Sequence record: PV261924.1
Reading direction: 5' to 3' (one strand)
DNA: 64,000 nucleotides
Position numbers and translations under genes: made by a program. Positions 2,454 through 17,248 of this stretch are shown piece after piece. Within the stretch, counting starts at the first letter, position 1, and every line of letters begins with the position of its first letter. The notes under the pieces were generated by a model. It was not told where the DNA came from. It ran no database searches and saw only the letters and a program-made list of their open reading frames with translations.

Positions 2454-2663
2454 TTATTCTTCTGATTGATCTTTTTTATTAAACCCGAATGGTGCTTCTT
2501 TCTCCTCCAATGCTAACCTCAGAGCAACACCACCAACTGCTTCCATCACTTTCAGGATGTCTTCAGCAGATGCATCTTCACCAAGTTCTTTGGCAATGTA
2601 CCAATACTTTGGCCAGAATGTTTCACCAGCCTTTTCGTAGTCTTCAAGTGTAAGGATTTTCAT
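2454..2663 (-). CDS. Hypothetical protein, 69 aa
   Basis: ORF track; 4-nt overlap with the methyltransferase stop. Confidence 0.8.
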   Translation of the reverse strand: MKILTLEDYEKAGETFWPKYWYIAKELGEDASAEDILKVMEAVGGVALRLALEEKEAPFGFNKKDQSEE

Positions 2664-3778
2664 AGTTTAGATAGAACTTCTTTGTAAATGTTTTCTGCGA
2701 TTGCTTTCATCATGAGTGGAGGAACCATCCTACCAACACGTTCGGTTTGTTGTGAATGTGATCCTGTAAGGATGAAGTCATCAGGTAGAGATTGAATACG
2801 TTTTAGTTCCTGTACTGTCAGAACACGATCCTCACCCCAATGAATAAGTCCACCACTTGCAGTAAGTGTAGGAGATGGTTTGTAGATAGATGCTCTCTTG
2901 GTATTGAAACAATGTCCTTTCTCATGATAGTCCATACCAGTTAGAACTTTCTTAGGGTTCTTTGGCATCTTGTGGACTACACGTTGATAGATACCACTAT
3001 TCAACATATGTTCGGTGAGTTTCTTGACATTCTCTGGGTCGTTCTCCACACCACCAATAATATCACCAATGGTTGTTTCTTTAGAAGATGTAGGTGGGAA
3101 CAATGAAGATACTGTCAATACGTTTAGACCGACCTTCTCTGCAATGTCCTGACGAACAGCAATGAAGATAAGTCTTTCTCTACCCTGACCGACACCATGA
3201 TAAGATGCCTTCATTACCTTTGATGTAACAAGATAGCCAATACCCTCAAAGGCATTGGTGATCTTTGCATAATAAGTCTTAGCCTCTCCAACTGTCAAAC
3301 CTTTGACATTCTCACCAACAATGACCTTGGGTTGGATGCCTTTGGCGACACGGATGAACTCGAAGAACAAGTCTTCGATATTTTCAACCTTCTTACCATC
3401 AGAATAGTTTTTTGTCTTACCCCAACCGTCAGAGTGTTTTGCACCCTCACCACGACACATAGACCCAGCAACAGAGAATGCTGAACAGGGTGGTGACCCA
3501 TCAAGAATATCAAGTTCTCCAGGTTTGATACCTGTAATCTTTAAGAAGTCACCACCAGTCAGTTGTTTGATGTCATCAGGAACAATGTGAGTGGATGGAT
3601 AGTTTGCGGCATAAGTTTTTCTTGCCTCTTCAACAAACTCATTGATACACAGAATCTTACCACCTGCAAGGCGGTAACCAGTAGAGGAACCACCTCCACC
3701 AGCGAACGTAGAAATGACGGTGAACTTCTCTTGAGCCTCACCGTCATAAACATCTTGTAGATTATATGGAAATGTCAT
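2660..3778 (-). CDS. C5-cytosine DNA methyltransferase family enzyme; probable carboxymethyltransferase
   Basis: Motif I FAGGGG, motif IV GSPPC, motif VI ENVKG, motif VIII QGRERL, motif IX/X ELKRIQSLPDDF...GRMVPP (Arg where Asn is canonical). Start set at MTFPY (3778) because the longer ORF overlaps the CmoA-like gene and TAAATA lies at 3793-3798. Confidence 0.9.
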   Translation of the reverse strand: MTFPYNLQDVYDGEAQEKFTVISTFAGGGGSSTGYRLAGGKILCINEFVEEARKTYAANYPSTHIVPDDIKQLTGGDFLKITGIKPGELDILDGSPPCSAFSVAGSMCRGEGAKHSDGWGKTKNYSDGKKVENIEDLFFEFIRVAKGIQPKVIVGENVKGLTVGEAKTYYAKITNAFEGIGYLVTSKVMKASYHGVGQGRERLIFIAVRQDIAEKVGLNVLTVSSLFPPTSSKETTIGDIIGGVENDPENVKKLTEHMLNSGIYQRVVHKMPKNPKKVLTGMDYHEKGHCFNTKRASIYKPSPTLTASGGLIHWGEDRVLTVQELKRIQSLPDDFILTGSHSQQTERVGRMVPPLMMKAIAENIYKEVLSKL

Positions 3779-3803
3779 ATCTTTTTTTCTTTTATTTAGC
3801 CTA

Positions 3804-4499
3804 TCATTTGATAGCAATAACTCCAACAAACTGATGATTTCTCCAGAAGATCTGACAGTCCTTGAAACCAGCACAATATATCATAGATTTAAGTTCATCC
3901 CAAGTATTTGGTTTCAACATGTCACGAAGTTCTTTCTCCTTGTCCATGATCTCTTCTGGAGTGAAGGATTTACGTTTGTAATCATAGTGATTGAATGTCA
4001 ACAGTTCCTGGAAGAACGCATTTTGACACATCAACTTCTCTGCAAAGATGAATGCACCACCCTCATTAAGACCCTCGTAGATTTTATCGATGGTCTCTTG
4101 ACGAGTTGTCTTGGGCATGAACTGAAGAGTGAACAGTGAAGTCACCAGAGAACAGTTCTTGAACTCGTAGTTGGTGATATTACCACGTACAAACTCAAGA
4201 ATAGCCCAAGGATAGTCTTTACGGATCTCTTTGTACCTATCATCAAGATCATCATAGAACCCACCCGCAAGTTCAACACCTACGTATTGTGTATGTCTAC
4301 GATTTGGATTATTGGCAAGGATCATCTTGGTAAGTTTACCAGTAGAACAACCCACATCAACGACTTTGGTATGATCTTCCACAAAGTATCGAGAGAACGA
4401 TACAGTATCCTCTAGAAGGTTTGAGTAACCCCGAATAGATTTGTCAATGTGATTATCAAAACCTTCTGGTGAATGTGCGAAAGAAAAGTCGTATGTCAT
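3804..4499 (-). CDS. cmoA: CmoA-like carboxy-S-adenosyl-L-methionine synthase homologue
   Basis: FDNHIDKSIRGYSNL, DVGCSTG, FTLQF, GGAFIFAEK, HYDYKR and AGF...FW...F all track the CmoA family layout (SVPGYSNI, DLGCSLG, NFTLQF, GGALVLSEK, HHDFKR), from recall. Confidence 0.8.
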   Translation of the reverse strand: MTYDFSFAHSPEGFDNHIDKSIRGYSNLLEDTVSFSRYFVEDHTKVVDVGCSTGKLTKMILANNPNRRHTQYVGVELAGGFYDDLDDRYKEIRKDYPWAILEFVRGNITNYEFKNCSLVTSLFTLQFMPKTTRQETIDKIYEGLNEGGAFIFAEKLMCQNAFFQELLTFNHYDYKRKSFTPEEIMDKEKELRDMLKPNTWDELKSMIYCAGFKDCQIFWRNHQFVGVIAIK

Positions 4500-4726
4500 T
4501 TTCCAACTCCGTAGTCTGGTGCTGCTTCTGTTTCAAGTTCACTAATCTCCTTTGAAGCTTCTTCAATAGCAGATTCGATCTGTGTGTCCAGTGTACCGAT
4601 TACTTCACGAATGTCAACGATACGAGGAGGAACACATTTGGGATCGTAAGTATAACGTTCCTGTTCTTTATATAGCACCTGACGAATAGCAGCTGCTTGT
4701 CTTACATCCAATTCTAGTTTAATCAT
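4496..4726 (-). CDS. Hypothetical protein, 76 aa
   Basis: ORF track; ATGA coupling on both sides. Confidence 0.75.
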   Translation of the reverse strand: MIKLELDVRQAAAIRQVLYKEQERYTYDPKCVPPRIVDIREVIGTLDTQIESAIEEASKEISELETEAAPDYGVGK

Positions 4727-5130
4727 AGGTCTCCCTCCTTACGGTTTTCAGAGTAGTGAACATCAAATGTCCCTGCAGGATATCGTGCAGACAGTTTCTC
4801 AACATTCATCTCAAGAATTTCATCGAATGAAATGTCAAGGGCCATACATGCCTGAGCAACATACCACATGATGTCACCCAGTTCACGTTTCATGTGAAAC
4901 GCATTATCTTCGTTGTAAGGTTTGCCTTGAAGGAAGATCTTCTTCACAACTTCAGTAAACTCACCAGCCTCTGCACTAATACCAAGAGCAGCAGTCAATA
5001 GTTGAGTTACATTTGCATCATCACGAACCTCAAGTTCACTCAGTCGAGCAGACAGAGTGGGCCAGTCTAGACTTGGTTGACTGGTGGTCTGACGGACAAA
5101 TTCAATATATTTTTGAGGATCAATAGTCAT
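4723..5130 (-). CDS. mazG: MazG-family nucleoside triphosphate pyrophosphohydrolase
   Basis: LGISAEAGEFTEVVKK...ELGDIMWY...NVEKLSARY. Confidence 0.9.
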   Translation of the reverse strand: MTIDPQKYIEFVRQTTSQPSLDWPTLSARLSELEVRDDANVTQLLTAALGISAEAGEFTEVVKKIFLQGKPYNEDNAFHMKRELGDIMWYVAQACMALDISFDEILEMNVEKLSARYPAGTFDVHYSENRKEGDL

Positions 5131-5429
5131 AGTTCAAGTTCTTTAAGTTCAGATTGAGGAAGATTTTGTTGGATAGGGATCTCCTGACCCTGAATTTTAA
5201 TCGTAGGAAGTGCAACAGGATCTTCAATAGATGTTGCTCGTACTTCTACAGTTTGTGGAGGATGAGGAAGTAAAATCTTATTGTATACAGCATCAGGGTA
5301 GATACTCAACATACATTCAACATCCCTCATCGTACCACAATGTCTCTTACTTCCATTGGGTAAAGTCATCTCGAAGTAATGAGGAACATCTGACTTCACT
5401 AGTGCAGGTTCATTCTTTCGTAGTTTCAT
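5127..5429 (-). CDS. Hypothetical protein, 100 aa
   Basis: ORF track; coupled to gp41 and mazG. Confidence 0.7.
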   Translation of the reverse strand: MKLRKNEPALVKSDVPHYFEMTLPNGSKRHCGTMRDVECMLSIYPDAVYNKILLPHPPQTVEVRATSIEDPVALPTIKIQGQEIPIQQNLPQSELKELEL

Positions 5430-6802
5430 CAGAATTTGAATCCCTCAAAGGACTTCTTTGGTTTGTCTTCGTAAGTATACTCCTCTTCTTGTTTGTTGTC
5501 AAGAAGATCATTCTGTGCAACCTGTTCACAATCAAACAGTCTCATCTTAGCACGATCGATACCAACAACAAATCTCTTGTAGATACTCAGATCGTTATAT
5601 CTGTTCTTCAATTGTTTCACCAGTATCTGTCCCAAGGATTCGAGCTCCTCGGTAGAAATAAGGGCAAACATAAGATCAGCAGTAGCAGGGAGTCCAAAGG
5701 ACTCACTAGTATCAGTAAGCTCGACATCAGAGCTACCATAACCAGAACGAGTGGTCTGCGTGGCAGATACGATAGGGACGTTTGCCTCACAAGCCAATCC
5801 TCTAAGTTCTTCTGCAATAGACTTAATAATCGTATATGAATTAACATTGCTACCTCCCCGATACCTAGAGGAAGCACAAATATTAAGGTAGTCAATGAAA
5901 ATAATGTCAGGTCTAAATGACTTCTTAAGTGCAAGTTCGTTAAGAAGTGACTTAAAGTGTCCACTGTGTGCAGTAGCAGTTGGATATTCTTTGATTATAA
6001 GAGTACCCTGAGTCTTTTGTGCGAGGTTTGTCACCTTTTTCTCAAAAGTCTGTTTGGGTAGTTCAGTAATATCTTGAATATTTACGTTCAGAAGATTAGC
6101 ATCAATACGTTCTGCAATCTTCTCTTCTGCCATCTCACAAGTGATGTACAAGACATTCTTATTCTGAAGGAGACAGGACGATGCCATGTGACACATGAAC
6201 AAAGACTTACCAACACCTGTACCTGCAAGAGCGATGTTCAGAGTCTTATTGGGTAGACCACCCTTGGTGATCTTATTGAAGTACTCAAGATCGAATTCAA
6301 TCTTGTTCTCCTTCTTATGATACAACTCAAATCGTTCTTCATAATCATTCAGGTAATCGTGACCCACATGATTATCAAAACTGACACTAAGTGCATCAGA
6401 CAGGATAGAAGGAATTGCGTCAGGAGACTTTTTGTTATCCTGACCATCTGCAATCTGAATCGACTCCATCAGAGCAAGATAGATTGCACGTTCCTTACAC
6501 CACTTCTCTGTGGTGTCACACAACCACTCAAACTCCTGTGGTTCCTCAGTCAGGTTACTAACCAAGTGAACCAACTCTTTGAATGATTGTTCGTTGATAT
6601 CATTCCTCTTCTCAATCTCAATACTCAGAACTTCCTGTGTAGGTGTCTCATTGTATCGATTTACAAAGTCAACAATCTCTTCGAACACAATCTTCTGATT
6701 ATGATCTTGGAAGTATTCTGATTTGATAAAGGGAATTGTTTTTCTTAGGAACTCTTCATTGTGTAGAAGACTCTTGAGGACAAGAAATTCAACTCTCTCC
6801 AT
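5429..6802 (-). CDS. 41: Replicative DNA helicase gp41 (DnaB-like)
   Basis: Walker A AGTGVGKS, IDYLNI, SATQTTR, SESFGLPATAD, QLKNRY. Confidence 0.95.
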   Translation of the reverse strand: MERVEFLVLKSLLHNEEFLRKTIPFIKSEYFQDHNQKIVFEEIVDFVNRYNETPTQEVLSIEIEKRNDINEQSFKELVHLVSNLTEEPQEFEWLCDTTEKWCKERAIYLALMESIQIADGQDNKKSPDAIPSILSDALSVSFDNHVGHDYLNDYEERFELYHKKENKIEFDLEYFNKITKGGLPNKTLNIALAGTGVGKSLFMCHMASSCLLQNKNVLYITCEMAEEKIAERIDANLLNVNIQDITELPKQTFEKKVTNLAQKTQGTLIIKEYPTATAHSGHFKSLLNELALKKSFRPDIIFIDYLNICASSRYRGGSNVNSYTIIKSIAEELRGLACEANVPIVSATQTTRSGYGSSDVELTDTSESFGLPATADLMFALISTEELESLGQILVKQLKNRYNDLSIYKRFVVGIDRAKMRLFDCEQVAQNDLLDNKQEEEYTYEDKPKKSFEGFKF

Positions 6803-7796
6803 AACTAAATTCTTTCTTTGCGATTTGATCTAACTGTTCCATCACCTCAGGGGTGAAGTATTGTTCTGGGTCTTTCAGAATAGCCTTGGCATAAACCTTC
6901 TTACCATCAATCTCATACCGACCTGCAACATTCTTCCACAGACCACCAATTTCTCCAAGTTCTAACAGACCATAGTATTTGTCCAGTCCTCTCTCATCAT
7001 AATAGAGACGAACTGTGACATCTTTATTCTCTTTACTCAAACGCGACTTAGCAGTCTTTGCCTTGATAAGGTTTCCAACGATTTCTGTTCCATCCTTTTC
7101 TTTTTTCTTTGAGAGATATATGATAGTAGAAGCGGCGTACTTAAGGCCACTGCCTCCACCCATCTCTTTTGTAGGAACATAAGAACCGATGACATCGTAG
7201 GTATGATTGGTAACAATCATTGGAATGTTTGCTTGACCAAGTTTGAGGGTTAACATTCTGAATGCACCCTTGACAAGTTGAGATTTAGTCATGTCTCTTA
7301 CTTGTTTGTCATCAAGAGCATCTTTAATTTCTTTCTCAGTAGACAACATACCCAGAGAGTCTAACACGAACATACAGGGTTTACGTTCGTCTTCAGACTT
7401 TTTCAAGTATATATCTACAGCCCTAAGAGCTTTGGATCTAAACTCTTCAATTGTAACAACATTTACAACAACTAGACGACTTAGGTCAATACCACGACTT
7501 TCAAGAAGAGATTTATTAACTGCTGCTTCAGTGTCAAAGTACAAACAGTAACCGTCAGGATTACTGTCAAGAAAATTTTTAACGACAGCGAGAGAGAAGA
7601 AAGTTTTACCAGTAGAAGACTCACCAGCAATGGCAGTAATCTTATTCCCAGATACACCACCAAATATACTACCTGAAACGAGTCCGTTAAAAATGTATGA
7701 ACCCGTGTCCACATACGTTTCGGAGTCGTCGATGTCTGCGGCGAGTTTTGTGTAGTCATCTCCAATCTCTTTTACAATGTCTTTAAGGAAATCCAT
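6789..7796 (-). CDS. uvsX: UvsX RecA-like recombinase
   Basis: AGESSTGKT, FVLDSLG, MGGGSGLKYAAS. Confidence 0.95.
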   Translation of the reverse strand: MDFLKDIVKEIGDDYTKLAADIDDSETYVDTGSYIFNGLVSGSIFGGVSGNKITAIAGESSTGKTFFSLAVVKNFLDSNPDGYCLYFDTEAAVNKSLLESRGIDLSRLVVVNVVTIEEFRSKALRAVDIYLKKSEDERKPCMFVLDSLGMLSTEKEIKDALDDKQVRDMTKSQLVKGAFRMLTLKLGQANIPMIVTNHTYDVIGSYVPTKEMGGGSGLKYAASTIIYLSKKKEKDGTEIVGNLIKAKTAKSRLSKENKDVTVRLYYDERGLDKYYGLLELGEIGGLWKNVAGRYEIDGKKVYAKAILKDPEQYFTPEVMEQLDQIAKKEFSYGES

Positions 7797-10333
7797 CAGC
7801 CAAAAAATAGTTCAAGGTTTACAGTCTTTTCAACATTCCATCCGATTGCATCAAGGATTGTCTTGAGGGGTTCAAGGAAAGCTTTGTTGAATTGTAGTTC
7901 GTAGTCGATGTATTTGTCAACACCGATCTCCCGTGGGAACTCCGAGATGAATGAGATCACATTCTCTCTAATCGGGTTCGCCTTCTTGAGATAGATGAAC
8001 TTGATCTTCTCACCGTTATTGATCTCAGAGTATTTGTTCTGAAGACCATACTCTTTAATGTAGTGATTATATAGAAGAGCACCACGTACATGAATGGGAG
8101 AACCCTTTGCATAGATCGTAGAGTGACTCTTATGTTTCTTCACGTCAGATACTGAACGGGGGAATGCAATATCTTCAGGAGGTAAGTTGTTGAACTTCTT
8201 TCTTGCATCATCGATAAACTTGATCACATCATCTTCCGTACCATTCATCATCAACTTCAGTGCATCCTTAATCATTGTTCGACAAGGAGCAGGAGTTGAT
8301 GACTTTACAGCCTCGATACCCATGATCTTGAGTTTAGGTTCTGAATAACGAACACCTTCACTATCCCAGACATTGAGAATGTATCTCTTCTTTGCTGTCC
8401 AGATTCCACGGTCTGCAATGTTCTCCCGTTTCATCTGCATCTTCTGAGAATATGCGTTCACATACGTCGCCAACTCTTGATACGATGACTCGATAAAAGG
8501 TTCCAGTTTCTCCTCACAGACCTTGTTAAGTAACGATACAACTGTTGCTTTTTCGCCAGATTTAGAACTAAGAAATTTAGAAACAACAGGTCCAAAATTA
8601 ATATAGATTGAGTCAGTGTCGGATGCAATGACATAATCCGTATCTGTAGTTTGTAACAGGTTATTTAGATACCCATTTACCTTATTCTCAATCCAACGAA
8701 TAGATGTTTGTCCTGAAAGCGTGATAGCTTCTGCATTCGCAAGTTTGAAGAAACGGAAGTATTGATTACCAATTGCACCATAGCAAGAGTTCAGTGCGAT
8801 CTTACGAGCCATCTGAAAGTTGTTGAACTTGGCAATATCTTTGATTGCCTGATCCTTCATCTTGGTCAACGTAGGGTCATCACGGTTCTTGAGTTGACTT
8901 TCAATATCAACCAACTTTTGTTTTGCAGCCAACATCTTTTTCTTAAAGATCTTACGTTCTGCATACATCTTCTCCATCAACTCGGGCATGAACCCTTTGA
9001 TGTCCTTACGGAACATTGCACCATTAGCACAGACCGCATAGTCCTTGTACATCTCGAAGGTGATCTCCTTGTTCAGGATCCGATCGATGGTTGCAGAGGG
9101 GTGTTTCTCATCCACCAGGGTCTCAGGAGAGATGTTGTACTGCATCATCAAGTGAGGGTACAGGGAGTTCAAGTCAAACGACACCACCCAGTCATAGACA
9201 CCAGGAACAGGTTGTTTCACGTAGGCACCCTCATACCTCTCAGACTTCTCCGAACGGTCACGGGGAGGAATCACAATGTTTCTCTTCTTGAGATAGTTGT
9301 AGATGATCGTATCCCACATACGAACCTGATACATCACATCGACAAAGTTCACCTTGGCATCATATGCCATGGTCAATGCCAACTCAATCAGTTTCATCTT
9401 GTCTTCCAAACGGTCAACAAGTTCCACGTCAATGATGTTGTAGTCTACAAACTTCTTCCAGTTACCATTGTAGAAATCTTTAAAGGTATCAAACTCAGAG
9501 TGGTCGAGCTTCTTCTGACCAAGTTCTACCTGGGCAATATAATCCAGTCGATAACTCTCTTGGTTTGTGTAAGTGAACTTCTTATACAGTTCCAGATAAT
9601 CAAGTGTGGTGACACCAGCAATGTCAAAAGTATTGAACTCACGACCCATGATCGTAATCTTTTCTTCACTGATGATACCCCAGGGAGAAAGAAGTTTCAT
9701 CTTCTTAGTTCCCATGATCCGATCAATACGACCACAGAGATACGGAATGTCATATAGACGACAGTTCCAACCAGTCACAACTTCAGGAGGATTTGTGTTC
9801 CAATGGAATAGGAATGAGTTAATCATATCAACTTCATTCTCATAGTGATAGTAAGTCACATTCTCCTGTGTAGGAGTATAAGGTTTCCTACCCCAAGTCC
9901 TAATTTTTTTAGTCGCATAGTCCTGGATGGAGATGGTCAACAACTCCTCAGAACAAGAATCGGGATCAGGGAATCCCTCCTCAGATTTAACCTCGATGTC
10001 GATCGTTACAAGATTGATCTTCTTAATATCAAACTTGATCTCATCTTCAGGATATTTGTCAGAGATATACTGGAATACATAACGGTCATTACCGTAGATC
10101 TTGAATCCATCTACATCTTCATATTTCTTGTAAAATTCTCTACAATCTCTTACAGTACCTGGTTTAATGGCTTCTACATTTTCACCCTCAAGAGTCTGAT
10201 ACTCAGTCTCTCGTTTTGATTTGACAAACAGAGTAGGAGAATACTCTTCTTTAAAAGTGACACTCTGTCCGTTTTCATATCCACGAACCAGGAAGTTGTT
10301 ACCAACGACCTGGACATTAGTATAAAATCGCAT
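7796..10333 (-). CDS. 43: Family B DNA polymerase gp43
   Basis: Exo DIEV, SFDLNSLYP, KIALNSCYG, ASDTDS, KKRY; uninterrupted. Confidence 0.97.
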   Translation of the reverse strand: MRFYTNVQVVGNNFLVRGYENGQSVTFKEEYSPTLFVKSKRETEYQTLEGENVEAIKPGTVRDCREFYKKYEDVDGFKIYGNDRYVFQYISDKYPEDEIKFDIKKINLVTIDIEVKSEEGFPDPDSCSEELLTISIQDYATKKIRTWGRKPYTPTQENVTYYHYENEVDMINSFLFHWNTNPPEVVTGWNCRLYDIPYLCGRIDRIMGTKKMKLLSPWGIISEEKITIMGREFNTFDIAGVTTLDYLELYKKFTYTNQESYRLDYIAQVELGQKKLDHSEFDTFKDFYNGNWKKFVDYNIIDVELVDRLEDKMKLIELALTMAYDAKVNFVDVMYQVRMWDTIIYNYLKKRNIVIPPRDRSEKSERYEGAYVKQPVPGVYDWVVSFDLNSLYPHLMMQYNISPETLVDEKHPSATIDRILNKEITFEMYKDYAVCANGAMFRKDIKGFMPELMEKMYAERKIFKKKMLAAKQKLVDIESQLKNRDDPTLTKMKDQAIKDIAKFNNFQMARKIALNSCYGAIGNQYFRFFKLANAEAITLSGQTSIRWIENKVNGYLNNLLQTTDTDYVIASDTDSIYINFGPVVSKFLSSKSGEKATVVSLLNKVCEEKLEPFIESSYQELATYVNAYSQKMQMKRENIADRGIWTAKKRYILNVWDSEGVRYSEPKLKIMGIEAVKSSTPAPCRTMIKDALKLMMNGTEDDVIKFIDDARKKFNNLPPEDIAFPRSVSDVKKHKSHSTIYAKGSPIHVRGALLYNHYIKEYGLQNKYSEINNGEKIKFIYLKKANPIRENVISFISEFPREIGVDKYIDYELQFNKAFLEPLKTILDAIGWNVEKTVNLELFFG

Positions 10334-11911: not shown

Positions 11912-12997
11912 TCAACAATCCTCAACTTGAATCAGTCTATGAGCCTTGCGAAGAGTTTCGTGAGTCGTATTGTTCAACTGAGGAATCACACCCAGAAGCT
12001 TCCAAGGTCGTTTAGCAGGAGGTTCAATCTTAATGTTGATACCAGCAGCAGATGCAGTGCGATTCACAATCTCAAAACACTCTTTGTATCGCATCTCAAT
12101 AAATGACATGAAGTCTTGATATCTGCTTTTGATTCTAGAAGGAATCTTGTCCGTAGTGTACAATACGACAAAACAATCTTCGGGAACATCCTTTGAAATT
12201 TTCGTCCAAAGACGACCACGGTTTGTTTCACCAGAAGAATAGACATAGACTCTCTTGCCATTGACACACTTACCTTTAAAGTAAGCATCTTTAGGAAGGT
12301 CAGGACACTTCTTCAGATAGGTCAAAACATCATCACGACTAGGATTCCATACTGCACGTTGTCCCCCTTTAACAGCATCAAAGATATTATCTACAAGGTC
12401 AGAAACTTGATCTTGTTTGATGAAACGTAATGCTTCAAATTCCTTGAGGAGCAAATCCGATATTGCGGTCTTATCGTGCTCAATACCACCGTCAGTAACA
12501 GCAGCAACAGCAGCTTCAAACAAGTCACCTTCTTTAGTGGGACGACTGATGAGGTCATCATTGCCAATTAGGGCTTCAGAGAGGTTCTGAACATAAGCAA
12601 CTGATGGATCTGAATCAGGATAGGAAAAAACTGCGACTGGAATGAACGTACATCCTGCAAGTATTGCAGCACGGATGCGAGTACGTCCATCTATAGTATT
12701 GAAGGATGTATCAACAATAGGGGGAAAAGGATCGTAACTCCAACCCTTTATTTCATATGAATATGCAATATCCTTATCTACATTATCTCTATTACCATCC
12801 TTACGAATGGCCATGTTATTCAGTTCTTCACAAACGATATCACCACCAAACTTTTTTAGATCAAGAAAAGCAAACTGAATGAACTTCCCTCGTTTGGAGT
12901 GTCTCTGAATTTCTTCATCAGACCACCGACCTTCATACTTAGTCAGATCGATATCTTGTTTTTGGGGACCAAATCCTCCTCTGAAATTAATACTCAT
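11912..12997 (-). CDS. Hypothetical protein with a ParB/Srx-like N-terminal motif
   Basis: PPIVDTSFNTIDGRTRIRAA resembles the ParB/sulfiredoxin DGxxR motif. Start could be 13018 or 12997. Confidence 0.6.
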   Translation of the reverse strand: MSINFRGGFGPQKQDIDLTKYEGRWSDEEIQRHSKRGKFIQFAFLDLKKFGGDIVCEELNNMAIRKDGNRDNVDKDIAYSYEIKGWSYDPFPPIVDTSFNTIDGRTRIRAAILAGCTFIPVAVFSYPDSDPSVAYVQNLSEALIGNDDLISRPTKEGDLFEAAVAAVTDGGIEHDKTAISDLLLKEFEALRFIKQDQVSDLVDNIFDAVKGGQRAVWNPSRDDVLTYLKKCPDLPKDAYFKGKCVNGKRVYVYSSGETNRGRLWTKISKDVPEDCFVVLYTTDKIPSRIKSRYQDFMSFIEMRYKECFEIVNRTASAAGINIKIEPPAKRPWKLLGVIPQLNNTTHETLRKAHRLIQVEDC

Positions 12998-16401: not shown

Positions 16402-16916
16402 TCAGGTTTACGATCTGGGATACGAAGATAGTTATCTTTTACCCAGGGTTTAGATGCAATATACATTTTATACGCATCAAATGTAGAAATACTTGTATCG
16501 TACTTGAATTCTTCAGGCATGGCACGAACAAACGGTGTGTGTGTTCCACTTCTTCCTGTAGGATCACCTGTAGGAAGTATTTCTTTTGCTGCAAGAAGAG
16601 AATGAAAACAAGTATGAATTTTACCATACCTCATCTTGTATTCATCACACAAAGCGATACCGTGGTGAAGTAACCATTGCCAGTTCATCACGAACTCACT
16701 TGCCCAGATGGTACAGGGATGGTTACGGAAGGCACCCTTCTCGGTGCTGTAAGGGGTTCCGTCGGCCTTAGGGATGGTCCCAAACCCATGACCCCATTTG
16801 TCTGAACAGACGATAGACAACATCTGACAGGTCTCTAGAGGCATCTTGACAATATGTTTGTCAGGGAGAACTTTGGCAGACTCCCATGGACATTCACTGG
16901 TTACAAAGATATTCAT
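16392..16916 (-). CDS. Pyrimidine-dimer glycosylase (DenV)-related protein
   Basis: MNIFV...DKHIVKMPLE..QML...HPCTIW...L..EY..RYGK.H pattern. Confidence 0.7.
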   Translation of the reverse strand: MNIFVTSECPWESAKVLPDKHIVKMPLETCQMLSIVCSDKWGHGFGTIPKADGTPYSTEKGAFRNHPCTIWASEFVMNWQWLLHHGIALCDEYKMRYGKIHTCFHSLLAAKEILPTGDPTGRSGTHTPFVRAMPEEFKYDTSISTFDAYKMYIASKPWVKDNYLRIPDRKPEWV

Positions 16917-17248
16917 TCTAAAGGTCTCTTGAAAGTTTCAGAAACTAAATCAGTTGCACCCATTGCCTCGTACATATAAGTTGCACCAGACCTTGGGTTT
17001 GTGTGTTCACCGCATGTAAACACATCACAGACTGCCATACCATTCTCAGGCCATGTGTGGATTGAGATATGAGACTCTGCAAGTAGAGCCACGGCAGTAA
17101 CTCCTTGAGGTTGAAATTTATGGGATTGAATACCAAGGAGTGTACTCTCTGACAACGAGGCAGCATTCGCAAGAACGTTACGAATGTGAGCCTCATCATC
17201 TAATAACCCAAAAGGACAACCCTTCAACGTGAAGAGTATATGTCTCAT
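16913..17248 (-). CDS. speD: S-adenosylmethionine decarboxylase proenzyme
   Basis: LLAESHISIHTWPE (ES self-cleavage site), CDVFTCG. Confidence 0.92.
   Translation of the reverse strand: MRHILFTLKGCPFGLLDDEAHIRNVLANAASLSESTLLGIQSHKFQPQGVTAVALLAESHISIHTWPENGMAVCDVFTCGEHTNPRSGATYMYEAMGATDLVSETFKRPLE

Follow-up and report, generated by a model that had tools for sequence, protein, structure and literature searches.

The closest described counterpart of the locus analysed here is the CmoA-CmoX-CmoY DNA modification system of Synechococcus phage S-B43 (Yang et al., Nat Commun 2025 (December), PMC12783734). In it, SpCmoA acts as a carboxy-S-adenosylmethionine (carboxy-SAM, Cx-SAM) synthase (kcat 2.33 per s), SpCmoX takes the carboxymethyl moiety from Cx-SAM and places it on the C5 of cytosine at GC (GpC) sites (in vitro and in Escherichia coli, in a CmoA-dependent manner), and SpCmoY, an asparagine-synthetase-like ligase whose gene is located between cmoA and cmoX, adds glycine to yield the glycine amide 5gcxmC (PMC12783734). 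In S-B43 virion DNA, where modification affects ~10% of all C and 75% of the GC sites, the deoxynucleoside 5gcxmdC is present and 5cxmdC, that of 5-carboxymethylcytosine (5cxmC), is undetectable (PMC12783734). The 64,000-nucleotide stretch examined here (henceforth the window, by which we mean its whole length) matches at 100% the record PV261924.1 of Synechococcus phage RN05-S, a phage of Synechococcus sp. MW02 with a 206-kb genome (window position 1 equals record position 124001), and encodes a cmoA-cmoX pair. We consider it very probable that this pair constitutes a cyanomyovirus CmoA-CmoX DNA carboxymethylation system in a two-gene form, devoid of the ligase. With distinctly less confidence, we favour the reading that RN05-S and the ~9% of its close environmental relatives with an empty ligase slot package DNA carrying terminal, un-derivatised and negatively charged 5cxmC, in which case RN05-S would be the first such cultured phage.

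The structural basis of the chemistry has been laid out for the S-B43 enzyme: in the 1.9-Å structure 8YF3, Arg350 touches the carboxymethyl group and replaces Asn304 of M.HhaI (the two residues being equated by superposition), the wild-type protein uses Cx-SAM only and not SAM, and the R350N variant is inactive with either cofactor (Yang et al., PMC12783734). The same authors drew the parallel with M.MpeI N374K (a comparison repeated in later work), employed the SPPC motif as a selection criterion and reported that 5cxmC blocks HhaI in vitro; the published survey comprises 5,615 sequences, and ligase-less phages, RN05-S and S-CRM01 are unmentioned in the paper (PMC12783734). As this system is already known from the 2025 work on its sister phage S-B43, the CmoA-CmoX pair of RN05-S is not new, and no new principle arises from it: the writing of 5cxmC by a C5-methyltransferase (C5-MTase) that bears the Arg and draws on a tRNA cofactor, carboxy-SAM, is already in the literature. 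Bare 5cxmC as a terminal mark would be a modest, testable addition to the known system.

The CmoA-CmoX pair of RN05-S

Both open reading frames (ORFs) of the pair are intact, co-oriented (minus strand) and situated inside the replication module. The downstream one, cmoX (2660-3778, 372 aa, start MTFPY at 3778), is predicted to encode a DNA cytosine C5-carboxymethyltransferase of the C5-MTase fold. It matches the whole domain PF00145 (E 1.8e-51; residues 19-366 against positions 1-324 of the 324-position profile) as well as TIGR00675 (dcm; 4.1e-45), and the closest solved structure is that of SpCmoX itself (PDB 8YF3; 1.4e-228, residues 1-372 to 1-372), from which it differs by 39 substitutions in 372 residues (89.5% identity). 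All the residues named for SpCmoX as contacting Cx-SAM or taking part in catalysis are identical in RN05-S: F25, E47, F48, D69, S95-P96-P97-C98 and R350. The motif IV catalytic loop S95-P96-P97-C98 (codons at 3485-3496, minus strand), in which Cys98 would be the nucleophile (the role given for SpCmoX), is almost invariant in our alignment of 11 isolate-phage MTases (alignment A1), and so are E156, N157 and V158 (ENV) and Q198, R200 and R202 (QxRxR) conserved in it.

Residue 350 is an Arg, encoded by an AGG codon at 2731-2729 (minus strand) in the context VGRMVPP, and replaces the Asn of the canonical motif X of 5-methylcytosine (5mC) MTases (GN.VP). By the contact seen in 8YF3, it would bind the carboxylate of Cx-SAM. 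The preliminary description of this DNA had read motif X as GRMVPP, with Arg at residue 350 counted from the MTFPY start, and had placed a CmoA-like gene 25 nt upstream of the C5-MTase gene; translation bears out the former, and the gap spans exactly 3779-3803. Its proposed alignment check holds in part: Arg350 lies opposite the Asn of the M.HaeIII motif X (GNAVP) in a HMMER alignment and its equivalence with M.HhaI N304 is published, while that with N374 of M.MpeI is taken from the literature, our own phmmer match to M.MpeI (4DKJ) being confined to residues 88-233 (E 7e-4).

The upstream ORF, cmoA (3804-4499, minus strand, 231 aa, TGA stop), encodes a putative carboxy-SAM synthase (SAM and prephenate to Cx-SAM). 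It is 99.1% identical to SpCmoA of S-B43 (2 differences in 231 residues) and matches the E. coli CmoA structures 4GEK (6.9e-28) and 4IWN (~7e-28) in full length (residues 11-231). Its scores against the family models are more modest, at 115 bits for the NCBIfam equivalog TIGR00740 (E 4.1e-33; cut-off 193.3 bits) and 101 bits for PRK15451 (cut-off 285 bits); judged by such scores, the phage CmoA clade is divergent from bacterial CmoA. Neither CmoA nor CmoX has a paralogue in the RN05-S genome (phmmer). On these identities the CmoA-CmoX pair of RN05-S is a near-copy of the published S-B43 system, and the earlier proposals that the phage makes Cx-SAM and places carboxymethyl on cytosine C5, with the Arg as determinant, find support through the S-B43 enzymes; the Synechococcus phage precedent mentioned alongside them is S-B43 (Yang et al., PMC12783734).

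We envisage that CmoA would convert SAM and host prephenate to carboxy-SAM (the activity shown for the 99%-identical SpCmoA), upon which CmoX would flip out the cytosine of a GpC site in phage DNA, Cys98 would attack C6, and Arg350 would hold the Cx-SAM carboxymethyl group that is passed to C5 to give 5cxmC, as shown for the 89.5%-identical SpCmoX. Because RN05-S lacks cmoY and any other homologous ligase (see below), we infer that modification stops at bare 5cxmC, whose likely role would be protection from restriction. The window holds 1,598 GpC sites, in which 12.6% of all its C reside; thus, up to ~12.6% of cytosines would lie in the target context, a figure that fits the ~10% of C (and 75% of GC sites) modified in S-B43. 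Across the window (1-64000) both GpC and CpG are under-represented relative to base composition (observed/expected 0.64 and 0.55, respectively), and since CpG is depleted too, the GpC depletion is not readable as avoidance of CmoX targets.

The association between the motif X Arg and a neighbouring cmoA extends to other phages. From the 363 relatives of the window CmoX in IMG/VR we examined the best 80 (86-98% identity), and the Arg is kept in every one of them (80/80). Among the 11 isolate-phage MTases of alignment A1 (from which an Erwinia phage ORF, L099:5293-6324, was left out as it shows 16% identity and is not an MTase; the 12-kb Erwinia phage piece yielded no cmoX), a motif X Arg goes together with an adjacent CmoA-like gene in the window, S-B43, S-CRM01, Pseudomonas phage PaBG, Streptomyces phage TurkishDelight and Moraxella phage Mcat8. 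The residue is Asn in Aphanizomenon phage CL131, Met (GMSVP) in the Flavobacterium, Cellulophaga and Bacillus phages (L095, L097, L098) and Leu (GLMVA) in Methylophilales phage Melnitz (L093), and none of these five has a cmoA within 3 kb. An adjacent CmoA-like gene hence accompanies 6/6 Arg MTases versus 0/5 of those with Asn, Met or Leu (Fisher p = 0.002). Given this difference and the Arg in all 80 relatives, the pairing is not chance. The temperate-type phage Mcat8 (KR093632.1, L091 2938-4645) displays the order cmoX-cmoA: its Arg C5-MTase is 45% identical to the window CmoX and is directly followed by a divergent CmoA-like gene (TIGR00740, 2.2e-17), both genes are annotated as hypothetical, and no ligase is found within 3 kb of them.

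The cmoA/cmoX junction

In S-B43, S-B05 and RB11-B the genes are ordered cmoA-cmoY-cmoX, and the stop codon of one overlaps the start codon of the next. The alignment of the window to S-B43 breaks exactly at the cmoA/cmoX junction, where 23 nt (3780-3802) stand against the 806-nt body of cmoY (L001 5381-6186), so that in RN05-S an A-rich 25-nt spacer (3779-3803, minus strand) separates the cmoA stop from the cmoX ATG, an 'empty slot' in the place where its relatives carry a ligase. The gene is not found elsewhere either. In tblastn searches of the phage collection, SpCmoY matched only S-B43, S-B05 and RB11-B among Synechococcus phages (and nothing in RN05-S), and the 465-aa ligase of the glutamine amidotransferase (GATase)/Asn-synthase type matched no Synechococcus isolate, RN05-S included. 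Profile hidden Markov models of both ligase types, run with filters off over the RN05-S ORFs of at least 40 aa (206 kb), gave a best E of 0.02 (ORFs of 47-59 aa), as compared with 4.6e-181 for the S-B43 positive control, and the GenBank annotation of RN05-S lists no ligase of the CmoY or Asn-synthase kind. By all these searches RN05-S is without an AMP-forming amide ligase homologue (of CmoY or GATase-Asn-synthase type), both at the locus and in the genome. The suggestion that the carboxymethyl group is a handle for hypermodification therefore goes unsupported in RN05-S, the handle-using ligase gene of S-B43 being absent.

The content of the slot was surveyed in 65 of the best 80 IMG/VR loci, namely those in which both cmoA and cmoX are present. 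The 465-aa GATase/Asn-synthase ligase occupies it in 38 contigs and the short SpCmoY-type ligase in 19; two more contigs combine the short ligase with a 448-aa ORF of unassigned function, and six (L005-L009, L074) contain a 23-25-nt spacer alone. The spacer sequence GGCTAAATAAAAGAAAAAA(A/C)GAT is conserved in the window, L005-L008 and L074, and L009 bears a variant of it. As the conserved spacer recurs in six independent IMG/VR contigs, and as the cmoA of S-CRM01 also abuts cmoX, the empty junction is natural rather than artefactual; on this recurrence, it is a real minority haplotype (6/65 close contigs).

The start of cmoX tracks the state of the slot. In ligase-bearing loci the start overlaps the upstream stop (ATGA; L001 5376-5379), so that the second cmoX codon must begin with A, and the proteins begin MK..., whilst all empty-slot loci start with MTFPY (window 3776-3778). 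Further ORFs were encountered in the slot: the 448-aa one, found between cmoA and cmoY (L056 3846-5192; L081), is without a match in Pfam, PHROG or PDB, and another of 334 aa (L051 1102-2106; also L048 and L078) has only a sub-threshold LRAT/NlpC-P60-like match (17.6 bits). Both may represent additional tailoring enzymes for the carboxymethyl handle.

The junction lies within a mosaic (recombinant) block at 2760-3920, delimited by identity profiles, which extends from the 3' end of cmoA across the spacer and through most of cmoX. The flanks (beyond ~3920 and below ~2760) are 97-100% identical to S-B43, and the block itself only 72-88%; inside it, comparison of the window with the L005 group of IMG/VR contigs gives 94-96% identity, and L005 matches the window more poorly in the flanks than within the block. 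In a neighbour-joining tree of CmoX (no bootstrap, and thus indicative only) the ligase types are interleaved. The tree might suggest that the ligase was lost a second time, independently, in L074, a reading that we rejected: L074 carries the spacer and cmoX start of the window followed by an S-B43-like cmoX body, and because a window-type junction is thereby joined to an S-B43-like gene we regard it as a recombinant and not as a separate loss. The identity profiles of the window, S-B43 and L005, together with the mosaic structure of L074, therefore point to an exchange of the slot and the adjoining cmoX by homologous recombination. Thus, from the contigs compared, the cmoA/cmoX junction is an exchangeable slot (occupied by a ligase of the long or the short kind, by a ligase with extra genes, or by nothing) that is reshuffled among co-circulating phages.

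Several considerations weigh against the two-gene, carboxymethylating system proposed here or against parts of it. The product in RN05-S DNA is deduced from orthology; the CmoA protein scores under the NCBIfam equivalog cut-off (though the equally divergent SpCmoA is active); and GpC specificity is likely, not certain, since 20 of the 39 substitutions that separate CmoX from SpCmoX fall in residues 208-317, the variable target-recognition region between motifs VIII and IX (enrichment p = 0.003). Moreover, a non-homologous phage or host enzyme could still derivatise the carboxyl group, beyond the reach of homology searches. In that event the CmoA-CmoX chemistry would be the same and 5cxmC would not be the end product, an outcome to which we attach a low (yet not negligible) probability. 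It draws on the S-B43 precedent, where the handle is fully consumed and no 5cxmdC is detected in virions, on the ligase of one kind or another that fills the slot in 59/65 close contigs, on the many unannotated ORFs of RN05-S and on the 448-aa and 334-aa slot ORFs, which imply that the handle chemistry is incompletely charted. However, a ligase homologue was found nowhere in the genome (tblastn, profile search), the modifying gene of all relatives sits precisely in the cmoA-cmoX slot, which in RN05-S holds nothing except the conserved 25-nt spacer, and the bare two-gene arrangement recurs in S-CRM01 and Moraxella phage Mcat8.

Two other explanations we deem highly improbable. One supposes that cmoY was deleted in the laboratory, or lost through faulty assembly, in a single isolate, the natural phage being three-gene; the identical cmoY of three sister isolates from the same host (S-B43, S-B05 and RB11-B) would accord with it, but six independent contigs, derived from metagenomes of different samples, show the same junction and spacer, and a simple deletion would not leave the junction inside a 1.1-kb block that is 12-28% off S-B43 and 94-96% identical to those contigs. 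The other holds CmoX to be an ordinary 5mC methyltransferase and CmoA to be tRNA-directed, serving the synthesis of uridine 5-oxyacetic acid (cmo5U), so that their adjacency would be incidental. The classical role of CmoA is indeed in cmo5U synthesis, and the tRNAs that RN05-S encodes outside the window include species with a U34 anticodon for each of Pro, Ser, Val, Ala and Thr. Yet wild-type SpCmoX takes Cx-SAM only, S-B43 DNA contains a carboxymethyl-derived base, the Arg and the CmoA-like gene co-occur as described above, the genome contains no CmoA paralogue, and none of the three other annotated methyltransferases of RN05-S gives a CmoB match (NCBIfam; a CmoB profile scan of all ORFs was not made). 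In our assessment, this explanation is largely refuted already by the published orthologue. The checks that had been put forward for the locus (HhaI alignment, expression in a cmoA deletion, liquid chromatography-mass spectrometry, the nanopore motif, R350N and co-occurrence) have likewise been published for the S-B43 orthologue (PMC12783734).

The ten tRNAs of RN05-S are encoded at ~108-111 kb and 50 kb of the record (L089 10085-12876 and L088 1176-1259, respectively), and include the U34 species Pro(UGG), Ser(UGA), Val(UAC), Ala(UGC) and Thr(UGU); the window has no tRNA gene and no further annotated methyltransferase. The cmo5U-bearing tRNAs of E. coli cover the same set of amino acids (Pro, Ser, Val, Ala, Thr). 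We reason that this overlap is probably a coincidence, because no CmoB was found among the annotated methyltransferases and because U34 tRNAs are to be expected in an AT-rich phage whose host is richer in GC.

Gene neighbourhood

The window covers a replication and structural region of a T4-like cyanomyovirus. Upstream of cmoA and on the same (minus) strand lie genes for a DNA polymerase (7796-10333), a UvsX/RecA-like protein (6789-7796) and a gp41-type helicase (5429-6802), a 100-aa ORF between the latter and a MazG-like pyrophosphatase gene (4723-5130; PF03819, 1.5e-9), and a 76-aa ORF (4496-4726); a 69-aa ORF (2454-2663, minus strand) follows cmoX. A promoter/terminator scan around cmoA-cmoX was uninformative, with 15 promoter-like sites versus 11.5 ± 3.2 in shuffled sequence. 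Homology between S-B43 and the window stops at window position 6392, within the gp41-type helicase gene (S-B43 locus L001 7813-8776), where the S-B43 annotation 'DNA primase-helicase' is shorter (939 nt versus 1374 nt) and is followed by unrelated small ORFs on the opposite strand, which suggests a rearrangement or insertion at that place in S-B43.

A SAM decarboxylase gene (16913-17248, minus strand; PF02675, 9.1e-34) is located 12 kb from cmoA, and the phage therefore encodes two SAM-consuming enzymes. ParBc-domain proteins are found on many CmoX contigs (Yang et al., PMC12783734), and in PaBG and TurkishDelight ParB-like nuclease genes stand immediately upstream of cmoX. The window contains a 361-aa ORF (11912-12997, minus strand) labelled 'ParB/RepB/Spo0J family partition protein' in GenBank; as it has no match in Pfam, NCBIfam or PHROG, we make no claim that it is a CmoX-linked ParBc protein.

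Comparison with known systems

S-B43 and RN05-S share the host strain (MW02) and the genomic place of the locus, which has the MazG-like gene on one side and a small conserved ORF on the other. They differ in that S-B43 has cmoY (816 nt, 271 aa, an asparagine-synthase-like glycine ligase) where RN05-S has the 25-nt spacer, in the cmoX of RN05-S, which belongs to another allelic lineage, and in the final base, 5gcxmC in the former and (by prediction) 5cxmC in the latter. With the same Synechococcus strain, near-identical flanks, and differences in the ligase and the cmoX allele, the two phages offer a natural contrast between bare 5cxmC and its glycine amide. If the prediction is true, four phages isolated on one host strain differ in their cytosine chemistry by way of recombination at one cmoA/cmoX slot, and the junction would act as a recombination-driven slot that diversifies the DNA chemistry of marine phages.

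The freshwater Synechococcus phage S-CRM01 (NC_015569, g149/g148) resembles RN05-S in having two genes and no ligase, a cmoA that abuts cmoX (with a 4-nt overlap) and the motif X Arg. It is set apart by its habitat, by the lower identity of its proteins (CmoX 66%, CmoA 82%) and by its neighbours, which are clamp-loader and regA genes; the pair is annotated and uncharacterised. The E. coli CmoA/CmoB pathway for tRNA cmo5U has a homologous CmoA that makes the same cofactor, but there the acceptor enzyme is CmoB, acting on 5-hydroxyuridine at position 34 of tRNA (ho5U34), whereas in RN05-S it is a C5-MTase homologue with DNA cytosine as its predicted target.

The engineered enzymes M.MpeI N374K and M.MedI N377K share with CmoX the C5-MTase fold and a basic residue in the position of the motif X Asn, which confers the use of Cx-SAM; their product is 5cxmC. 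They are distinct in being engineered, in bearing Lys and not Arg, and in their specificity for CpG; furthermore, the M.MpeI variant gained the use of Cx-SAM by mutation, while wild-type SpCmoX already uses Cx-SAM only. An enzyme of natural origin with GpC specificity and 5cxmC as its final product, as we predict for RN05-S, would offer the kind of activity that is now being engineered for epigenomic mapping.

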